Source: Dicyema japonicum (lineage: Eukaryota; Animalia; Dicyemida). Taken from it: DNA of 64,000 nucleotides. The stretch covers positions 2,119,761-2,183,760 of the forward strand of contig RDEW01000003.1 of the NCBI GenBank assembly GCA_011109175.1, given 5' to 3'. Made by a program: the position numbers and the translations under genes. Shown here in pieces: positions 16,660 to 50,576 of this stretch. The notes under the pieces were generated by a model, which was not told the DNA's origin, made no database searches, and saw only the letters and a program-made list of their open reading frames with translations. Positions within the stretch are counted from its first letter, which is position 1. The number at the start of each line of letters is the position of its first letter.

Positions 16660-18142
16660 AATTTGATTGATATAACTCGCTAGATACATATATTCCAGTA
16701 ACACTCCTTTTGCTGCTGTAGAACATCCGGAATTTTCAAATTCGTCAAATGCTTCTTCCTTGGGGTCTACTGGTTAGTATACGGTCGACCAATGAAGGTG
16801 GATCGTGTGTACGACCAAATACATGAAGACTGTCGGTAAAGACTCCAGGACAAGACAGTGTCTATGATGTTGGACGGGTGGAGTAACATTCATAATGAAC
16901 CTGTTATTTGTGTGTCAGTTGTAACATCGGATGGAGAAAGCTATCTAATTGACACTGTGGACACCTCTGGATATAGCCACACCGCGGAGTATCTTCAATC
17001 TGTTGCTTTAGCCTCTGCAAAGTCCGGCGAGCAACGGTTTGGGTGTAAAATCGGGAGTCTTGTAACGGACAATGCTGCCAACATGACTAAAATGAGGCGG
17101 ATAATGATGCAAGATGACGATGAAATTATTACACATGGTTACTCGGCACAGTATCTCAACCTTCTCTCAAAGGATGTCAAAGTAGCTGACGTCAAAGAAA
17201 CCATCTTAAGAATAAATACTTTCGAAACGTCCATCTTCCAGCAGCATGGTACAAATCTGCTGAAGGAAAAAAACTTGTTCTTCCGATTGATGTTCGCTGA
17301 AACACTTTATCAGACTGTCCACAATCTTATGTTGATAATTGTAATTTTGAGAATTTGTGAGGAACACAGATCGAATATTGATACAGAGATTGCTTCCAAA
17401 GTACAAAATATTTTCCTAAAACGACGGGTTGAAGAATATTTGCGGCTGATTAAACCAATTGCTGTCGCTTTAGACAAAATTCAAAATGATTCTACGACGA
17501 TTAGTCATGCTGTAGAAATTTGGAAAGAACTTGAACAGACTTAATTGACTATGAATGTACGACTATTTTAGAAAAAGTGAAAACTCGACAGATCAAGCAT
17601 TAACACCTTTCCACTTGCGAATCTAATGGACCCAACACGTTGTGGGAGATCTCTTTCAACTGCTGAAATTGACCTCGCCTGAACATTATGAATATGCTCT
17701 TCCGACTCTGATTAATTTCAGAGCAAAAGCTGATCCAATCAAACTATACATGTTCGTCCGAATTTATTGAGCAAAGTATCACCTATAGCTTGGTGGGAGT
17801 CGAACTCTTACCAGTTACCTTCTGAAGTAACTTTCACTCTGCAAAAAAATTCTTGGAGCAGTTGCTTCCACAGGTGGAATAGAACGAATTTTTCCGACTT
17901 TTGGATTCTTACATTCAAATGTACAAAATAAGCTGGGAATTGAAAAAGCTGACAAACTTGTCTTTTTTACGAGCTTTTAAATAAATAAATACGATTTCCA
18001 TTGTTTTTATTTTTTTTACTTTGTTTCCAAATAAAAATCATTTAATTCAAAAAAATCTGATTTAAATCAAAAAATTTTGTTTAAATCAAAAAAATCGGAT
18101 TTTTCGATTTTTTCATAAAAATCATGATTTTTAACAACCCTG
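16660..18142 (+). mobile_element. hAT DNA transposon, left end missing
   Basis: LDGWSNIHNEP and VTDNAANM catalytic motifs. C-terminal dimerisation motif WWES..ASTGGIERIF..F..H..KL. A/T-rich subterminal repeats and terminal CAACCCTG (reverse complement CAGGGTTG) at 18135-18142. Confidence 0.85.
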
Positions 18143-26679: not shown

Positions 26680-29400
26680 AAATATGTATGTTATGTTATT
26701 CAAATTAAGTAGTGTCCGACCCTTGGAGATCTCATGAGCCAATTTTCTACACTCTCCCTGATCCATCGCAATTTGGAGTAGCCTTGATATAGGCATTCCC
26801 GTGACGTCTTCTACCGTGGATAGCCACCGAGTCCTCGGTCGACCAGGTCTTCTTTTCCCAGTAATATTGCTCAGTATAATGGTTCTTCCCAGGGAATCAG
26901 AGCGGACAGCATGCCCAAAGAACGCCAATCTGTGTTTTACGATTCTTCCTTCTAGCGAAATGTCCGTCTCCACCCGTTTGAGTACATCGGTGTTTGTTAT
27001 TTTGGAAGTCCAAGGGATTCTTAGTAAACTCCTCCAGCACCAAAGTTCAAAAGCATCAATTTTCGTCTATCCGCCTTTTTCAGTATCCATGATTTGCGCC
27101 GTATAGAAAAACCGGGAACACGATTGCATTAACCAGTCTGCATTTGGTCCTTAAGCTAATATTTTTGCTTTTCCAAATTCTATTCATTCTCAGTCCCATG
27201 GCAATTCGCCTCTTGATTTCCAAGCCTCCGTCACCATTCCGATTAATTTTTTTTAAAGAAAGAAATTTTATTATCAAATGAATAAAAATTAAATTAAGGC
27301 ATCTGAATGGCCATGCTATTTCCCCTAACAATTCCGATTAATTAGACATCGCCACTCTCTATTTTCTTATTCCCAATTTTTAGTTCCATTATTAGCAGTC
27401 GTCATAATTTTGGTCTTCTTGATATTTAGCAATAAACCAAAGACGGCGCTCTCTTCTCTTAATCTTAGAATCAACTCCCTGAGGCCATCCTCTGTTTCAG
27501 CCAGTAAGGTTATATCGTCAGCATAGTACAAATTATTGATATTCCTGCCTCCAATTTTAATCCGTTATTTGATACAGTATCCAATTTAGTCATGATCATT
27601 TCGGCATAAATATTGAATAGGATGGGAGATAATAAGCATCCTTGTTTTACTCCTTTACCAATTTTGAACCAATCGGTATCTCCATACACTGTTCTAACAG
27701 CAGCTTCTTGATTCTTATAAAGAGATTTTATAAGCAATATCAGATAAGCATCGAATCCAAATTCTTTTAAAGCGAACCACAGCTTGTCATGTATAACGGA
27801 ATCAAAAGTCCACCGGACATTTGCTATATGGTCACGTGTGCCTCGTCCCTTCTTGAATCCTGCTTGGACGTCCGGTAGAATCATTTCGGCATTTGGCATT
27901 AGACAATGTTTTATTATCTTTAGAAGCATTTTGCTGACGTGGGGAATTAAGGCTATTGTACGATAGTTTGAACAGTCCTTGCTATCCCCTTTTTTCGGAA
28001 TTAGAATAAATATAGATCTTTTCCACTCACGTGGCCAAATACCAGTTTCCCAAATTTTTTGACATAGACTGGTGATAGCTGTCAGCGGTATAGCCTTCAA
28101 CAACGAGATGTTGTCAATCTCCGGTGCCTTGTTCCCCGTTAATTGCCGTGTAGCCCACACGCATTCCTCCTCAAGGATTTTATGCCTCTCACCCAACGTT
28201 GCTTCATCAACACAAATGGGTGGGCACACAGTTTCTGAATATATGCCGTATATTCTCTCCAACGATTTCGGATGTTCTGTTGGCTTAGCAATTCTACACC
28301 ATCCTTGTCCTTGATTTTGCCCATCATTTTCGTAAAGGGGGTTTGTAATCTTTTTAGTTGTAAATACGCATTCCTAGTGTGACCTCTCTTATAGTCATCT
28401 TCCAATTTTTTGCAGCGTAACCTCCAGTAGTCTTCTTTATCCTTCCTGGCTGCTTTTTTGAATTCAGAGTTAAGTTTTCTTGTCTCGTCTCGATTCCCAG
28501 AGACTTTAGCAGCTTTACGAGCCTCAGCAATGTTTAGGATGTTGGCAGAGAGCCACTCAGAGCACTTGGCTGGCGTTTTGTCTTTGACATGTTTTATTGC
28601 AGCGTTCCTGATAACCAACTGCATATCATTCCACAATTTATCAGACATCCTTCCGTTCAAATGCAGTAATCCAATATTGTGCTAAACTTCCATTGTGTAT
28701 TCTGGTGGTATGTTTGAGACATCGAATTTCTTTAATCGGGGGTATTCCAAGTTTTACTGAATTTCGTCCTAATTTTTGCAACAAGTAGTTCTGTTCCACA
28801 GTATGTCCCTGGATATGTTTTGACGGCTGTTATAGAGCTTTTCCAGCGTTTGGCGCACAAATATAATCAATCTGGTTCCTAGACATTCCATTTGGCGACG
28901 TCCAAGTGTATAATCGTTGTTTGCGCTGTTTGAACCATGCCCCCAGCATCATTTCTTTTCCCCAAACCAAAACCTCCCACAATATGTGGCATACACCCAA
29001 CTTTTAAGTTGAAATCCCTCATTATGTAGATTATGTCCTTTTTGGTATTAGTTTTAGTGCCTCTTGAAATTCATAATAAAATTGATCAGTTTCGTCATTC
29101 CTGGCAATAGATGTTGGGGGATACACTTGCATGACTGTAATTTTCAATGGTCGTCCAGTGAAGTTCGCTTACTCCAAGCAGGTCAATATCAAGCCTTCTC
29201 ATTTCTCTTTTTTACGACTTTTAGTTTTCCTTCGCTTAAGCCTACGATCCATGTTGCGAACTTGTGAGATTCTGTGTGACGAAGACTCGAGATTTGATGT
29301 TTTGCAGTAACGTTGCTTCCAATAATATCGTAGGAGAGTTTGCTCATAAGATTTTTTAGCATTTAAATACAGGGTAGGTTGCCAGGTCTTTCCCCATCAA
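26680..29400 (-). mobile_element. Near full-length degenerate RTE (BovB-like) LINE
   Basis: APE (IDLLGVSELHW), RT (GFKKGRGTRDHI, GVKQGCLLSPILFN, YADD), C-terminal RLAFFGHAVR..GKRRPGRPRTRW, and an (ACATA)n-like tail. Confidence 0.88.
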
Positions 29401-40842: not shown

Positions 40843-41639
40843 TCAATCCCGACGTGAGGCAGACCTACTACTCTTTGATCGACTCCTCGAGGATGATCTT
40901 CTCGACTCACTACAATAAACACATCCACACCTGCTTTCAGGGCTTCGCCTCCTATACCTTGATGACCTTGTCTTTCTGTACGATTCAGAACTCGATCTAC
41001 TGTAGGACCGATTCCTTCTCCGACTCGTGGACCTATGAATAACTCCCAATTCAACCTAGATCTCATCGATCTGTGTCTCCTGTCCAACGAACGGTCTCTT
41101 GAGTATGATCGACGCCTCGGGGACCTGCGAAAACGTTAATCACGGCCGACGGATCGTCGAACGGCGAGAAGACGGTGATCATACTAGCTAGCTGCGCATG
41201 CATAACACACACTCAGATATCGCACATAGCTCAGCCCGCCAGTACCTTGAACCTCCTTTCCCGCCAAATCTTGAACAGTCGTAGGCGTAATGACCTCGCT
41301 CATTGCACTTAAAACATCGGTCGTTTGGGTTGAAAGCCTTCCGCTCTCTTCCATTATGTCCCCTGTTAGATGGACCATTGGAATGTTCAACTCGAACTCT
41401 TCCCCACAAACGTGGGATCCATCGAGTTTCTTCACTGCCTGGTCGGCGTCTCGAGGATCTTCAAATTCGACAAATGCAAATCCAGGGGGGTTACGTGCCA
41501 CCCAAACACTACGAATTGCTCCATAGCGAGAAAATGAGTCTTCTAATTCTCGTTCAGATGCATTTTTCGATAAATCACCGATAAATACTTTAGAAGGATT
41601 TCTTTTATGTTAAAAACAGACAAACCTCGAATCAGACAT
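40843..41639 (-). CDS. SRSF7: SR splicing factor with RRM, CCHC zinc knuckle and RS domain (SRSF7/9G8-like)
   Basis: [55 protein letters not shown] tail. Introns of 24, 121, 23 and probably 21 nt. One 1-nt deletion near 41405. Confidence 0.9.
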
Positions 41640-44929: not shown

Positions 44930-45570
44930 TCGAGTTGCCATCTCATTCTTACTCGCTGTTCTTCCCGGGTTCCAACGCATTTCCGGATTGGGCGGGGTTT
45001 CTAACTTTTTTGAAACGTAGTAAGGCTCCAGTTTTCCTCACTAATTCCTCAAAAGGTGTAGGGTTTAGAGGTGTCCAAGAAAACCTTTGCATCATGGAGA
45101 TCATTCTAACTTCAGGTGTGTTCCGTAAAGTCGACAAAATTACTGATGGGCTGAAGAGTTGGTCGTCGGTTTATGAAGAAACCCTTCTTGATCCACACAG
45201 ATTGAGGAACAGACCAACATTTCGTACAAAAATACTCAATCGACCACTTTGGAAGCGGATATCGACCAATTTCACTGTCGGCTTGCATTCTATCAACCTC
45301 TTCCCCCACAGTAGTGATTGGCTGAACGCGTTTCCATCATTTCCAATTGGTTCCCTTTTGAAACAGGACGCCCTCCGAAATGGGATATTCATTCGTCTCG
45401 GATCGACCTGTACCAGCCTCATCCGTGCCCTTATGGATCCATTGTGAACTGCAAAGACTTCCCCCACTCTCTTGCTGTCTCAGCAGTGGCCGGTTCCCAA
45501 AGCATGCCGCCATCAACTGAGTTGTGAAGCGCTCTCATGAGACGGCTAATTCCGTCAATGGGGGCTGCTC
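44930..45570 (+). mobile_element. CRE-like fragment
   Basis: SSDWLNAFPS..GSLLKQDALRNGI.IRLG..HPCP. Confidence 0.7.
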
Positions 45571-45959
45571 TAACTTTCGAGAATTTCAAATAAGAAAATA
45601 CGACCGCCTCTCAACAAATTATATGTACAGTCCGTAGTCGAGACGAGCTGAGTTTTCGTTCCCAAGATGGTGTCTTCTCTAAAATCGCGGGGGTCAATAT
45701 AACGAAAGCGAGTAACAACGTCAGGGAACTGAGTGCCTGTTCCAAAAGATTTCTCAGGCAGTTGTCAGGGGAAACAGCACTCAATTACTCTAGCTGGATT
45801 ACTTTGATTGTTTTGTACGTAATAAATTATTCTTTCATTTTTTTATTGTTGAAGATAACATAGGCAGAAACTATATTCACTTTTTCAGTGTCATTCGTTA
45901 CTATTCGTCAGAGTTGGTGATGAATAATGATGTTCTCGGGCCCTTTTTTTAATAATCCG

Positions 45960-46560
45960 AATTGCTTTGAACATTTTGGTTCATCTTTATACCTTTCGAT
46001 TTACTCTATCTGTTTGTCGACTTTTCCTTTCTCCATGGAAAGAGAATCCAAGACCAAATGTCGACAATCAGAGTCAAAGTAGTTATATGTTACCAATTTC
46101 TTCCGAATGGGTCCCGCAAGGATCCTCTCTCACCCATTCTCTTCAACCTCTTTATGAGAGACATGCCTTCCAACAGTAGTGACGATACTCTGTTCCTATC
46201 CTATGGTGACGACATAATCCTGTTAACAAGGGACCAGTGTATCCACAAACTTTGTAAAAACGCTACTTGGATACTAAAAAAGATGTTTCCACTCAACATT
46301 AAATCATCTATACCAATATATACTACCGTCAATCGGCTACTGCTGTGCGGAATGGGGTACTAACCTATCCTATACCAACCTAAAGATAATAAGCTCCTTC
46401 CAAGAAATAGTAAAGATGACTCTATGAAGGTCTTCCTCCTCTGTACTAAAGCCAACCCGTTCGAGGAACTCGTGAGAACGGAGCCAAATATCGGGAGCCC
46501 AGTTGAAACCTCAAACATCCGAAAAGTGATTCATCTATACAGGCAGTGTGTCAGCTCTCG
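45960..46560 (+). mobile_element. LINE RT fragment
   Basis: LSPILFNLFMRDMP..SYGDDI. Confidence 0.6.
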
Positions 46561-46911
46561 GGAGGAACACAAGAAAGGATGAGGCGACTGTTTAAGGAGG
46601 CTGGGATCACCTGACGGCCCCCACTCTCTTTTATTTTGTTGGTGATTCTTGTTTTAAGTAAATAGCGTCCAAGTTGATGTTTTTTTGCAATGAACTTCAA
46701 ACGTTGAGTTTTGAAAGTACCGAGGGAGAATGGACAACGAGTAATCAAGCGTGAAGAAGACATTTTTTAAAAAGGGACGTCACTACCTCAGCCAAAAGGG
46801 ATATAATCCCCAAGTTAAAGATTTCGAAATAAATATAGTCAACCACTCTATTGGTAAAAATACTAATTAATATTAAATGAATAAAACAATGAATAATTAA
46901 TAAAATAATAA

Positions 46912-49329
46912 ATGGCGGAAATTTATTTTACTGTTGTAATGGGTGATAGGCGTAAAGTTGCAAAAAATTTATTAAAAGGAAATACAGTTAGGACACACAA
47001 ACTGATACTTCCGATAGTAACTGATATTATTTACATTTACAGGTGTTACTGAAGATGAACAACTACTTGTTAATGAACATCACTCTAATTTGGAAAGTAC
47101 TCGTGTTGACAGCAATGAAACGTCAAATCAAATATTAGATCCCCGAGATAACGGACTTTTTTATTGTATTCACATTTATAATATCTAGGACGAATATTTG
47201 AGCTTATTTACTAACAAAACAAAAGTCGTGGAGAAACTAGGAGATCATCACGTAATAAATATAACCACGAGAAGTTACAACTAGAAAGTCTGCATATCTG
47301 GAAAAAATAAATGAACAAAGAGAAACTTCAAATTTACCAGTTATGTCTTCTCATCACACATCTTTATGTCGAATCGTTCTGTTACTCCACCTAAAAGTTA
47401 TCTTAAAATCTGGTTTTGGATGCAATGCCTGTGAGGGAATCTACAAGACAGGAGAGTAATGTTGGAGGAGAATCTTTATCTGACCGATCAATAGAGAGCA
47501 ATGTTCGAAGAGGTTCCAAATTGAGGAGGACTATAGAAGATAGCATTGGAAGGGATTCACTATTAGATGAAACTATAAAAGATACTACTGAAAGAGATTC
47601 TGTTTCGAAGGAGACTATAAAGATACTACTGAAAGAGATTCTTTTTCGAAGGAGACTATAAGAGATACTACTGAAAGATATTCTGTCTCGAAGGAGACTA
47701 TAAAAGATATTACTGAAAGAGATTCTGTTTCGAAGGGGACTATAAAAGATACTACTGAAAGATGTTCTGTTTCGAAGGGGACTATAAAGATACTACTGAA
47801 AGAGATTCTGTTTCGAAGGGGACTATAAAAGATAATACTGAAAGATATTCTGTTTCGAAGGGGACTATAAAAGATACTACTGAAAGATATTCTGTTTCGA
47901 AGGGGACTATAAAAGATACTACTGTGAAGAATTCTTCATTTGGGGTGGATAAAGATAATACTGAAATGAATTCTATCTCTGAGGAGACTATTGCAGATAA
48001 TATTGAGACGAATTCTTTGTCGGAAGAGACTATTGAAGATAATACTGAGATTAACTCTCCGTTGGAGGAGAATATGGAAGATAATATTGGAATGGAGATT
48101 ATAGAGGACAATATTGGGAATGATTCTGCTGTCTCCGAAGATTACATTCATAGTGATGTCGTATTAGAGGGTTCTGTAAAGAAAATTGAAATCCCAGATG
48201 GTCAAAATGATACAATAATTATGTCAAGAGAAGGAAAAAGACATTGATTGATAGTAGCGATGAGTCAGTTCACACGGATGTCAATGTAAAGTCAACTGTG
48301 GAATATATTCCCAATAATAATACAATGTATTAAATTAACTAAATGTAGTGTATCTAAAAAGGACGCACAAGTGATGACCGACATATTAATGACTGATTAC
48401 CCAAATATTCATAGAGTTCATTTGTGCTTATTCTAGTCAAAATATAATAAAAGACAAAAAAGACCCGTGCGTCGCAAAGTGCACGATTCAATGATGAAAC
48501 TTCGGAAAATAGATGACTATGATGATATGGTAGAGAGGTTCCGTGGAATAAATGAGGTCGTCTGTCTTATATATCTTAGAAATTGTCTCGTCGGGGAATT
48601 CGAGGGAGAATAGGTTAACACTCCATAAATATTGTAGTAATCCCTGAGAAAGGACCCCCGGATGTAGAAGATCAACAAGAGTACGAGTCGTAGGTTTGGA
48701 TATACCTAATGGAGAGAGGATAGAGTATATGGATAAAGGACGTTTGTTATCAATTAATATATAGGTGGACTGGAGATTGTGGAATAACAAAGACAACATT
48801 TTCAAGTTTATCTACATATCATCTTAGATGTTTATCGTAGAATTCCACTTAAGAAAAAGGATCCAAAAGAAGTTGTTATCCCCAATTTACTAACGATTTG
48901 AGAGAGGAAACGACAGAAGGTTATCTATTATCTTGATTATAGTATGCGTTCGATTGGAGGCTAAAGTCGTGGGGGAGTTTGAGGGGTATAGAATCTACTC
49001 GCATTTGGGTGAATCGTTCAATAAGTTAGGATATTTGATTATATCACCTCACTCAAACAAACCAACAAAAGTATTAAGTGGAATATCTGTGGTTGTAATA
49101 GTATTTTATTAGTAGTATTACTATGTTACTACTGGCTATGTTTATGTAGAGCAAGGGGATAATAATCCTGTGGTTTTTGAAAAGTTTAGTGCATTCTTTA
49201 TTCCCGATGGTTATTATTTGTTATAATCCTATTAGGTGACTCTTACTCTATTACTAATAGTACTGGAGGACTGTTAGATTAACATATGTACTTGATTCTG
49301 ATGCTACAACGTGCATAACTAATTTCTAA
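46912..49329 (+). CDS. CENPC: Centromere protein C (Mif2/CENP-C): acidic repeat region, CENP-C motif, C-terminal cupin
   Basis: TPGCRRSTRVRVVGLDIPNGERIEY (48654-48728) aligns without gaps to the vertebrate motif TPNVRRTKRTRLKPLEYWRGERIDY. Spliced C-terminus YRIYSHLGESFNKLGYLIISP..YYVTTG..FFIPDGDSYSITN fits the CENP-C cupin. Start, exon borders and final stop (49282 or 49329) are uncertain because of indels. Confidence 0.75.
47455..48106 (+). repeat. Coding 42-nt (14-aa, DTTERDSVSKGTIK) tandem array
   Basis: Eight near-identical units at 47581-47914 (two are 41 nt, at A-runs), with progressively diverged units on both sides. Confidence 0.92.
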
Positions 49330-49350
49330 TTATTGTGTTTACTTTTTCTA

Positions 49351-50576
49351 TTAGTTAAATGGGGGTTCAGAGTAAATATCAAAGTCGGGTGACTATTATA
49401 ACTACTTATTAAACCTGTATATGATGGCAGTGTAGGTTAATGTGTAAGTTGGAAGCATCTAGGGTAGAGTTTGATAGACAGATAACACAACAGTTATCCC
49501 AGGACATTGTTTCTTAGCTTCTTCATATTCTGTCCGATTTCCATAATAAGGAATATTATAAACCATATTTTTCATAGATTTTAGTTCATCATTAATCTAT
49601 GTAGATAAATATGAATACTTGGGTCAGTGTGGCCTCATATCCCCCTTTCCTTTATTAATCCAAAACAGTGATTGTTGTACAGCCAGTCATTTACGATCGG
49701 GAACCCAAGGTACTGCAGATGTACTCGAATTTGATGAGTTCTTCCAGTTATTAGATGACCTCAATTATAACATGTATTCCAACATTTAACAAAACTGCAC
49801 CCTTCGTTGTAAGAAATTCTCTCGAAAACAGTCATCGACTTCTTACCTTCCAGAGAAATAACCGAGAAGGTTTTGTTGACACATAGAATAGGTAAATGGC
49901 ACTCGACGATGCCACTGGAACTTATATTTATCATACTTTGGAAAATTCCCTTCTACTTGACAAATGTACTCCTTTCTTAGCTTTCCTTCATCATCCGATA
50001 ACATTTGACGATATCTATCAGACATTTTAGAAGATTTGGCAAATATTAGCAGTCCTGACGTGTCTCTGTCCAATCTATGAACATCTTTAATATCTCAAAA
50101 CACAAACTTAGTAAGGGACCAAAGTTATACTCATGTTGAATTATTTGCTTTAGTGAATTGTAGTAATATCTCCCAGATTCGTGAGTTACCATGGAGGCGG
50201 GTTTATCAACAATGAGGATATCAGAGTCATTGTGATGAATTTTTATGTCTTCATTCTTTACCGGCATTTCGTGACTAAACTAAGGTGATATTCCAACCAA
50301 TGAGCATGTAAAGTGAGCAAATCTTCACATTGGAGTTCATAGTCTATACTAGTTGGTTTCTTGTTTATCAGTAGACGATTGAGTTTGATATTGTCCTCCC
50401 TCAATGAACCATCTAATTATACTGTAATTAAATGGAGGTGTATTGAAGAAATGTTCATATAAGTAGGCGACTGTCAGTCCTACCCATTGTTTCTTGCAGC
50501 GAGCTCTGAAAGTCCTGTAATATGGGTGTACTTTCCGGAATCCGTCCTCAAAGTAATAAATCTGACTGTCATTCAT
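49351..50576 (-). CDS. RPUSD2: RluA-family pseudouridine synthase, RPUSD2/Pus9-like
   Basis: [67 protein letters not shown]. Confidence 0.88.

Follow-up and report, generated by a model that had tools for sequence, protein, structure and literature searches.

The stretch of DNA analysed here (the window) comprises 64,000 nucleotides (nt) of the dicyemid Dicyema japonicum (GenBank assembly GCA_011109175.1, contig RDEW01000003.1, positions 2,119,761 to 2,183,760 of the forward strand), and coordinates are counted from its first letter. On its plus strand lies a gene for the centromere protein CENP-C. Once assembly errors have been corrected and nine introns removed, a single open frame of 568 codons extends from an ATG at 47425 to a TAA at 49327-49329. 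The gene is apparently a genuine and intact CENP-C: the CENP-C motif, the exon structure, the C-terminal cupin and the order of these elements concur, and the aromatic core of the motif is the sole feature that fails. The predicted protein would have the layout usual for CENP-C, in which a long, acidic, repetitive and disordered part is followed by the motif and a C-terminal cupin dimerisation domain; in the model protein, the cupin lies about 60 residues downstream of the motif.

The gene model was built on the read-corrected sequence, and short introns were first suspected from an in-frame 'tag tag' in the cupin-like frame. All nine introns run from GT to TAG and are 21-26 nt long. Among 51 animal genomes, introns this short are reported only in D. 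japonicum and in myxobolid myxozoans (PMC13644364). The D. japonicum genome has a mean intron length of 38 bp, 49% repeats and a GC content of 36.7% (PMC6736024); GC is about 35-45% here, against that figure and the 29% of Henneguya (PMC6736024, PMC13644364). T accounts for 46% of the introns versus 28% of the exons, and a filter for intron-like sequences (19-30 nt, a T content of 45% or more, at most two internal G, TAG at the end) returns nine candidates in 1.1 kb, seven of which are introns of the model. In the spliced 3′ part of 446 codons, the alternative frames hold 32 and 58 stops, and block-shuffling of 48229-49326 yielded an open path in none of 300 trials. Other ways of reading the locus were discarded. 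Long-intron models (donors at 48741, 48745 or 48764; acceptors at 48943 or 48992) were dropped because the micro-introns account for all stops and frame changes, and reassigned TAG or TAA codons are needless, since each in-frame TAG (48762 and 49110-49115) lies inside a T-rich GT..TAG intron of 21-23 nt.

For exon 1 to stay in frame, a single homopolymer base has to be added at three places: after about 47621, about 47788 and 48225. The last is taken from read contigs, and the other two follow from the presence of 41-nt units with AAA among the 42-nt units with AAAA of a tandem repeat. A large share of the disordered region in the modelled CENP-C consists of this repeat. Upstream of the ATG, hydrophilic stretches at 46912-47343 may be 5′ exons hidden by assembly errors; dynamic programming joins them to the coding sequence only if about four further homopolymer errors are assumed, and the resulting paths are contrived. 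A Pfam scan of the N-terminal pieces, where the Mis12-complex-binding region of a CENP-C would lie, gave no match.

Contigs from four sequencing runs were aligned to 47950-49700; five runs, dated 2017 and 2019, contain the stretch. Within these 1.75 kb, the read contigs reveal nine sites at which a homopolymer of the assembly is one base short (Table 1), and these deletions are responsible for most of the apparent frameshifts in the interval. One deletion falls within the first codon of the original prediction, a call of the CENP-C motif at 48654-48728 made from the letters alone: after 48654, all three contigs covering the motif have C6 where the assembly has C5. The corrected text reads ...VIPEKGPPGCRRSTR... 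(...EKGPPGCRR) and replaces ...ERTPGCRR. The first residue T of that call and its upstream frame are thus artefacts of the assembly, and the 'TP', which resembles the CDK1 site adjoining the chicken motif, therefore does not exist. A further discrepancy is found at 48912 in a linker exon, where the window has G and the matching read contigs have A; it is synonymous (ACG to ACA, Thr) and represents either an allele or a base error. Open reading frames (ORFs) of this genome often look like pseudogenes although the genes are intact, owing to dropped homopolymer bases. In this assembly, homopolymer deletions and micro-introns conceal intact genes.

Table 1. Features of the CENP-C locus and of the contigs that match it (window coordinates).
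Feature	Position	Strand	Description
Possible further 5′ exons	46912-47343	+	Hydrophilic stretches that look coding and change frame: MAEIYFTVVMGDRRKVAKNLLKGNTVRTH..., ...VTEDEQLLVNEHHSNLESTRVDSNETSNQILDPRDNG and RRSSRNKYNHEKLQLESLHIWKK (47239-47310)
Exon 1	47425-48326	+	Acidic, Ser/Thr-rich, probably disordered; basic KRRKK at its end
Tandem repeat	47572-48086	+	TRF: period 42 nt, 14 amino acids (aa) TIKDTTERDSVSKG; 8.5 near-identical copies, 12.4 with degenerate ones
Micro-intron 1	48327-48348	+	22 nt, GT..TAG; required for the open frame
Micro-intron 2	48416-48436	+	21 nt, GT..TAG, T-rich
Micro-intron 3	48557-48579	+	23 nt, GT..TAG, T-rich
Small exon	48580-48613	+	KLSRRGIRGRI (as read in the model protein)
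Micro-intron 4	48614-48637	+	24 nt, GT..TAG, phase 1
CENP-C motif exon	48638-48741	+	105 nt including the C missing after 48654; both junctions phase 1; encodes VIPEKGPPGCRRSTRVRVVGLDIPNGERIEYMDKG
CENP-C motif	48654-48728	+	Arginine anchors RRSTRVR, GLDIP where PLEYW is expected, then NGERIEY
Micro-intron 5	48742-48764	+	23 nt, GT..TAG, phase 1; takes out the in-frame TAG at 48762 and moves into the cupin frame
Linker exons	48765-48805, 48828-48919	+	Read-supported insertions: G after 48780, C after 48879
Micro-intron 6	48806-48827	+	22 nt, between the linker exons
Micro-intron 7	48920-48942	+	23 nt, GT..TAG, T-rich
Cupin exons	48943-49094, 49116-49209, 49236-49329	+	TAA at 49327; G after 49264 from reads
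Micro-intron 8	49095-49115	+	21 nt, between cupin exons
Micro-intron 9	49210-49235	+	26 nt, between cupin exons
Read-supported missing bases	after 48225 (A), 48654 (C), 48780 (G), 48879 (C), 49264 (G), 49497, 49600, 49640, 49654		1-nt homopolymer deletions of the assembly
Paralogue patches	48411-48468, 48507-48573, 48719-48782, 48895-48953, 48992-49060, 49247-49297; 49465-49497 (3′ flank)		Matched by read contigs

The CENP-C motif is the one defining motif common to the CENP-C proteins of animals, fungi and plants (Talbert et al. 2004, PMC549713). As assembled, 48654-48728 translates to TPGCRRSTRVRVVGLDIPNGERIEY, with the motif string PGCRRSTRVRVVGLDIPNGERIEY. A phmmer search of 177,635 distinct PDB sequences with the 36-residue open stretch returned three matches only, all of them peptides of the CENP-C motif, one from rat (4x23_V, E 0.037) and two from chicken (7bxt_K and 7by0_K). 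The alignments to the rat and chicken peptides are ungapped, with agreement in the RRS.R.R, L and GER..Y columns, which bears out the earlier claim of a gap-free motif with the arginine region and GERIxY in place. Column by column, the arginine anchor R-R-S/T-x-R-x-R is present (RRSTRVR against RRSNRIR in rat and RRTKRIR in chicken), as is the C-terminal end G-E-R-x-x-Y (GERIEY against GERIDY and GERVTY). The aromatic core P-x-x-[YFW]-W is absent: GLDIP occupies the position of PLEYW, so that the Leu is retained while Pro, Tyr and Trp are replaced by Gly, Ile and Pro.

The original prediction had also held that GLDIP, encoded with ATA CCT, goes beyond a single-base error, and the reads agree. 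Three short-read contigs from three runs on one sample (X1 record 1, X2 record 10 and X3 record 17) show no substitution or indel across 48655-48779; being identical over the motif, they establish that the codons ATA CCT are real DNA. Two base changes would be needed to turn ATA into a Tyr codon, and three to turn CCT into TGG.

The motif exon provides a second line of evidence. In animals (mouse, chicken) and plants (Arabidopsis, rice), the CENP-C motif lies on an exon of 105-108 bp whose flanking junctions are in the +1 frame (Talbert et al. 2004, PMC549713), and the Dicyema motif exon is 105 nt long with phase 1 at both ends. This match bears on the idea that an extra micro-intron or an alternative splice at the motif exon alters the expressed peptide, either through retention of 48742-48764, giving a cupin-less ...GERIEYMDKGRLLSINI*, or through removal of a GT..AG segment from 48690. 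Many GT..AG paths are formally open, micro-intron splicing reportedly uses reduced signals (PMC13644364), the in-frame TAG at 48762 would terminate a short isoform, and the chicken alignment extends into ...GRLL, inside the proposed intron 48742-48764. However, the GT..AG candidates within the motif have a high purine content and a GAG end, in contrast to the nine introns of the model, which are T-rich and finish with TAG; any excision within the motif would abolish the ungapped GER..Y match, and the 105-nt phase-1 exon equals the conserved one. An altered peptide of this kind is thus very improbable.

The cupin provides the third line of evidence. The spliced C-terminal 113 residues match the Pfam family PF11699 (CENP-C_C, 'Mif2/CENP-C like') from position 3 to position 83 of its 85-position profile, with 26.8 bits and an E-value of 6.3e-6. 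This match appears only with the spliced cupin, and Pfam scans of single exons gave nothing useful. In the PDB, the cupin has only three matches: human CENP-C 856-930 (7xhn_C), chicken CENP-C (7x85_A) and S. pombe Cnp3 (6o2d_A). The downstream cupin in the same spliced frame, together with the 105-nt phase-1 exon, upholds the earlier identification of the motif as that of CENP-C. KNL2 proteins contain a SANTA domain and are not known to have a cupin. No SANTA domain was found in the pieces scanned with Pfam, the CENP-C cupin being found instead, and an identity as KNL2/M18BP1 is ruled out by the CENP-C-type C-terminal cupin seen in the Pfam and PDB matches.

Could the likeness to the CENP-C motif have arisen by chance, or GLDIP from sequencing errors? 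Errors are frequent in the assembly (nine 1-nt deletions within 1.75 kb, one of them in the first codon of the motif call), and the E-values of single peptides are modest (0.037). Yet the three short-read contigs are base-for-base identical over the motif, RRSTRVR and GERIEY stand ungapped in the same frame, the CENP-C cupin follows in that spliced frame, and the exon has the conserved length and phase. Across all six frames, the window contains a single instance of a relaxed form of the motif ([RK]R[ST].R, 8-10 residues, GE[RK]), against an expectation of 0.005 from shuffles. Chance or artefact retains next to no probability and is refuted by the read contigs, the Pfam cupin match and the PDB cupin matches.

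The aromatic residues do not appear to be supplied from elsewhere in the protein. A check for a second, intact motif, proposed along with the original prediction, found none: the 568-aa model contains no Trp, and the pattern R....P..[FYW]W is absent from all forward frames of 45500-49400. In the stretches upstream of the ATG, including RRSSRNKYNHEKLQLESLHIWKK, the spacing from Arg to Trp is non-canonical. The small exon at 48580-48613 encodes a second RRxxRxR cluster, KLSRRGIRGRI(VIPEKG), which is followed by IVIP and lies 17 residues upstream of RRSTRVR(VVGLDIP). Judged by its residues, this exon resembles a half-copy of the first half of the motif, and may represent a tandem half-motif or a second arginine anchor.

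According to the solved structures, each of the two modules with which CENP-C binds nucleosomes makes contacts of two kinds, one of which is electrostatic, with the acidic patch of H2A-H2B (PMC7475651). The arginines of the motif insert into this patch, and the Tyr/Trp pair packs on the hydrophobic tail of CENP-A (PMC7475651). Mutation of the arginine or of Tyr/Trp lowers nucleosome binding by vertebrate CENP-C (Kato et al. 2013, as cited in PMC4830207).

Against this background, the Dicyema gene probably encodes a functional CENP-C in which docking on the acidic patch would persist and reading of the histone tail would be weaker, or adjusted to an altered CenH3 tail. The arginines of RRSTRVR would dock the motif on the nucleosome acidic patch, and the upstream RRGIRGR cluster and dimerisation through the cupin may assist this docking. 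Aromatic recognition of the CenH3 tail would have disappeared, or weaker aliphatic contacts (Val-Val-x-Leu-x-Ile) to a likewise altered tail would have taken its place. Relaxed or shifted constraint in the dicyemid lineage would be the simplest cause, because dicyemids evolve fast. A more far-reaching proposal is that this is the only working dicyemid CENP-C and that it operates without aromatic reading of the CenH3 tail. Its nucleosome binding would depend solely on the acidic patch, possibly by way of a dimer bearing two arginine anchors in tandem, with centromere identity provided by a re-shaped CenH3 or by a diffuse or CenH3-independent kinetochore; we regard this as doubtful, and at best a slim possibility. 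The strong readings, namely binding to H3 and a CenH3-independent or holocentric centromere, have no computed support, and paralogous copies of the gene weaken them.

Several observations weigh against the view that this copy is the working CENP-C of the animal, or against parts of the model on which that view is built. The PF11699 score of 26.8 bits is slightly under the curated cut-off of 29 bits, and the E-values of the PDB cupin matches are marginal when taken singly. Word searches of protein libraries with the cupin ORF and the 161-aa repeat ORF found no relatives and no self-match. The two A insertions in the tandem repeat are inferred from unit length, although they are of the same kind as the errors that the reads verify. 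Several splice paths are formally available in the linker between motif and cupin, where an open path also appears in 6.7% of shuffled linkers, and nowhere is the model less certain than at the boundaries of the linker exons. The coding sequence spans at least 47425-49329, and the N-terminus beyond the ATG at 47425 is provisional. No RNA run is on record to support this copy, and run X5, which is RNA-like, has no contig there; X5 comes from another study and consists of 43,489 contigs (12 Mb), and at such depth the lack of a contig is informative neither way. Finally, some contigs align only to patches of the 3′ half and 3′ flank, with a likeness of 90-95% and 2-6 times the depth of the main contig, and the copy at 47425-49329 may therefore be something other than the working CENP-C.

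DNA-level duplicates of the 3′ half of the CENP-C gene do exist elsewhere in the genome, and the patches that they match span 48316-49497 of the window overall. These similar and deeper contigs, and the lack of evidence for expression of this copy in the runs on record, are what would be expected if it were a redundant or decaying paralogue within a small CENP-C family, with the working gene elsewhere, perhaps with an aromatic motif, and GLDIP a product of drift. An open frame of 568 codons over nine introns, arginine anchors, GERIEY and an intact cupin would, in contrast, be unexpected in a dead gene, and every apparent frameshift in this copy that could be checked with reads is an assembly error. 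Moreover, the paralogous contig that reaches the motif region (loose end at 48719) reads VGFD / frameshift / VNGQKIEY, is also without YW and has stops in all three frames; this second copy itself looks dead. Decay of the copy described here is consequently a minor but real possibility. A joint of 48765 to 48992 in a deeper paralogous contig was considered as a splice and rejected, as it would put motif and cupin out of frame; located between two copies of TATAG, it is probably a deletion in the paralogue.

Searches for relatives by other routes were equally unproductive. The sole HMMER match of the 54-aa cupin exon against 1.84 billion representatives was to a protein of 681 aa in which a VVGEFAGYGIYE stretch is repeated, and this match was judged spurious, and the ESM Atlas gave no usable match.

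A working CENP-C with altered tail reading can be compared with several known systems. Like the canonical motif of vertebrate CENP-C and yeast Mif2 (4X23 from rat, 7BXT and 7BY0 from chicken), the Dicyema motif lies upstream of a C-terminal cupin, sits on a 105-nt phase-1 exon and contains both arginines of the acidic-patch contact. It differs from the canonical R....P..YW core in having Gly, Ile and Pro in place of Pro, Tyr and Trp, and in the absence of a Thr-Pro CDK site before the motif. Dragonflies (Odonata), a lineage without CenH3, have kept the cupin of CenpC while the CenpC motif has decayed (Drinnenberg et al. 2014, PMC4359364). Dragonfly and Dicyema proteins have in common a recognisable cupin and a motif without the residues that read CenH3; in Dicyema, however, the motif is still recognisable, with the arginine anchor and GERIEY intact and CENP-C as the top PDB matches, a partial change rather than the decay seen after loss of CenH3.

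Putative shark CENP-C offers another natural example of a CENP-C-motif position without the aromatic pair: the tryptophans of RxxxxPxxWW are missing there, and a second motif in the central region retains them (Kral 2016, PMC4830207). In sharks and teleosts, the tryptophans thus come from another motif of the same protein, whereas the Dicyema model has neither Trp nor a second core motif. Neither precedent is an exact match, the Dicyema motif being otherwise well kept and no second motif being present. The CENPC-k motif of KNL2 (M18BP1) is of the same arginine-plus-aromatic nucleosome-binding type (PMC11879092, PMC10015371).

Structures define the Tyr/Trp pair as what reads the tail of the centromeric histone, and in the Dicyema CENP-C this pair has been swapped out. 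The gene can be viewed as a natural separation-of-function allele, in which the frame, exon structure, arginine anchor and cupin are kept and the aromatic pair is gone, with no other Trp in the protein. It poses the question of whether binding to the acidic patch and dimerisation suffice to bring the protein to centromeres, or whether there has been a parallel change in the CenH3 tail. The host adds to the interest of the locus, since dicyemids combine a very reduced genome with programmed chromatin elimination; their somatic cells eliminate chromatin and selectively amplify DNA (PMC6543705). We found no published work on dicyemid centromeres or kinetochores, and two dicyemid genome papers make no mention of them (PMC6736024, PMC6543705).

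The surroundings of the gene contain other coding sequences and abundant mobile DNA. A neighbouring gene on the minus strand (49431-50576), arranged tail to tail with CENP-C, encodes an RluA-type pseudouridine synthase, as judged by eye from ORF translations. Run X5 is recorded as 'DNA?', yet it looks like RNA because it skips a 22-nt GT..AG micro-intron of this RluA-like gene (49597-49618, minus strand). Further away, the frame breaks of an SRSF7-like RRM around 41400 (41184-41501, minus strand) probably stem from homopolymer deletions too. Transposon sequence is plentiful in the window, with reverse-transcriptase and hAT-type domains among it. Transposon remains include a reverse-transcriptase fragment at 46058-46363, recognised from its translation and 1 kb upstream of the CENP-C gene, and further transposon ORFs are found at 27513-28262 (RVT_1) and 16858-17541 (hAT-type DUF659).

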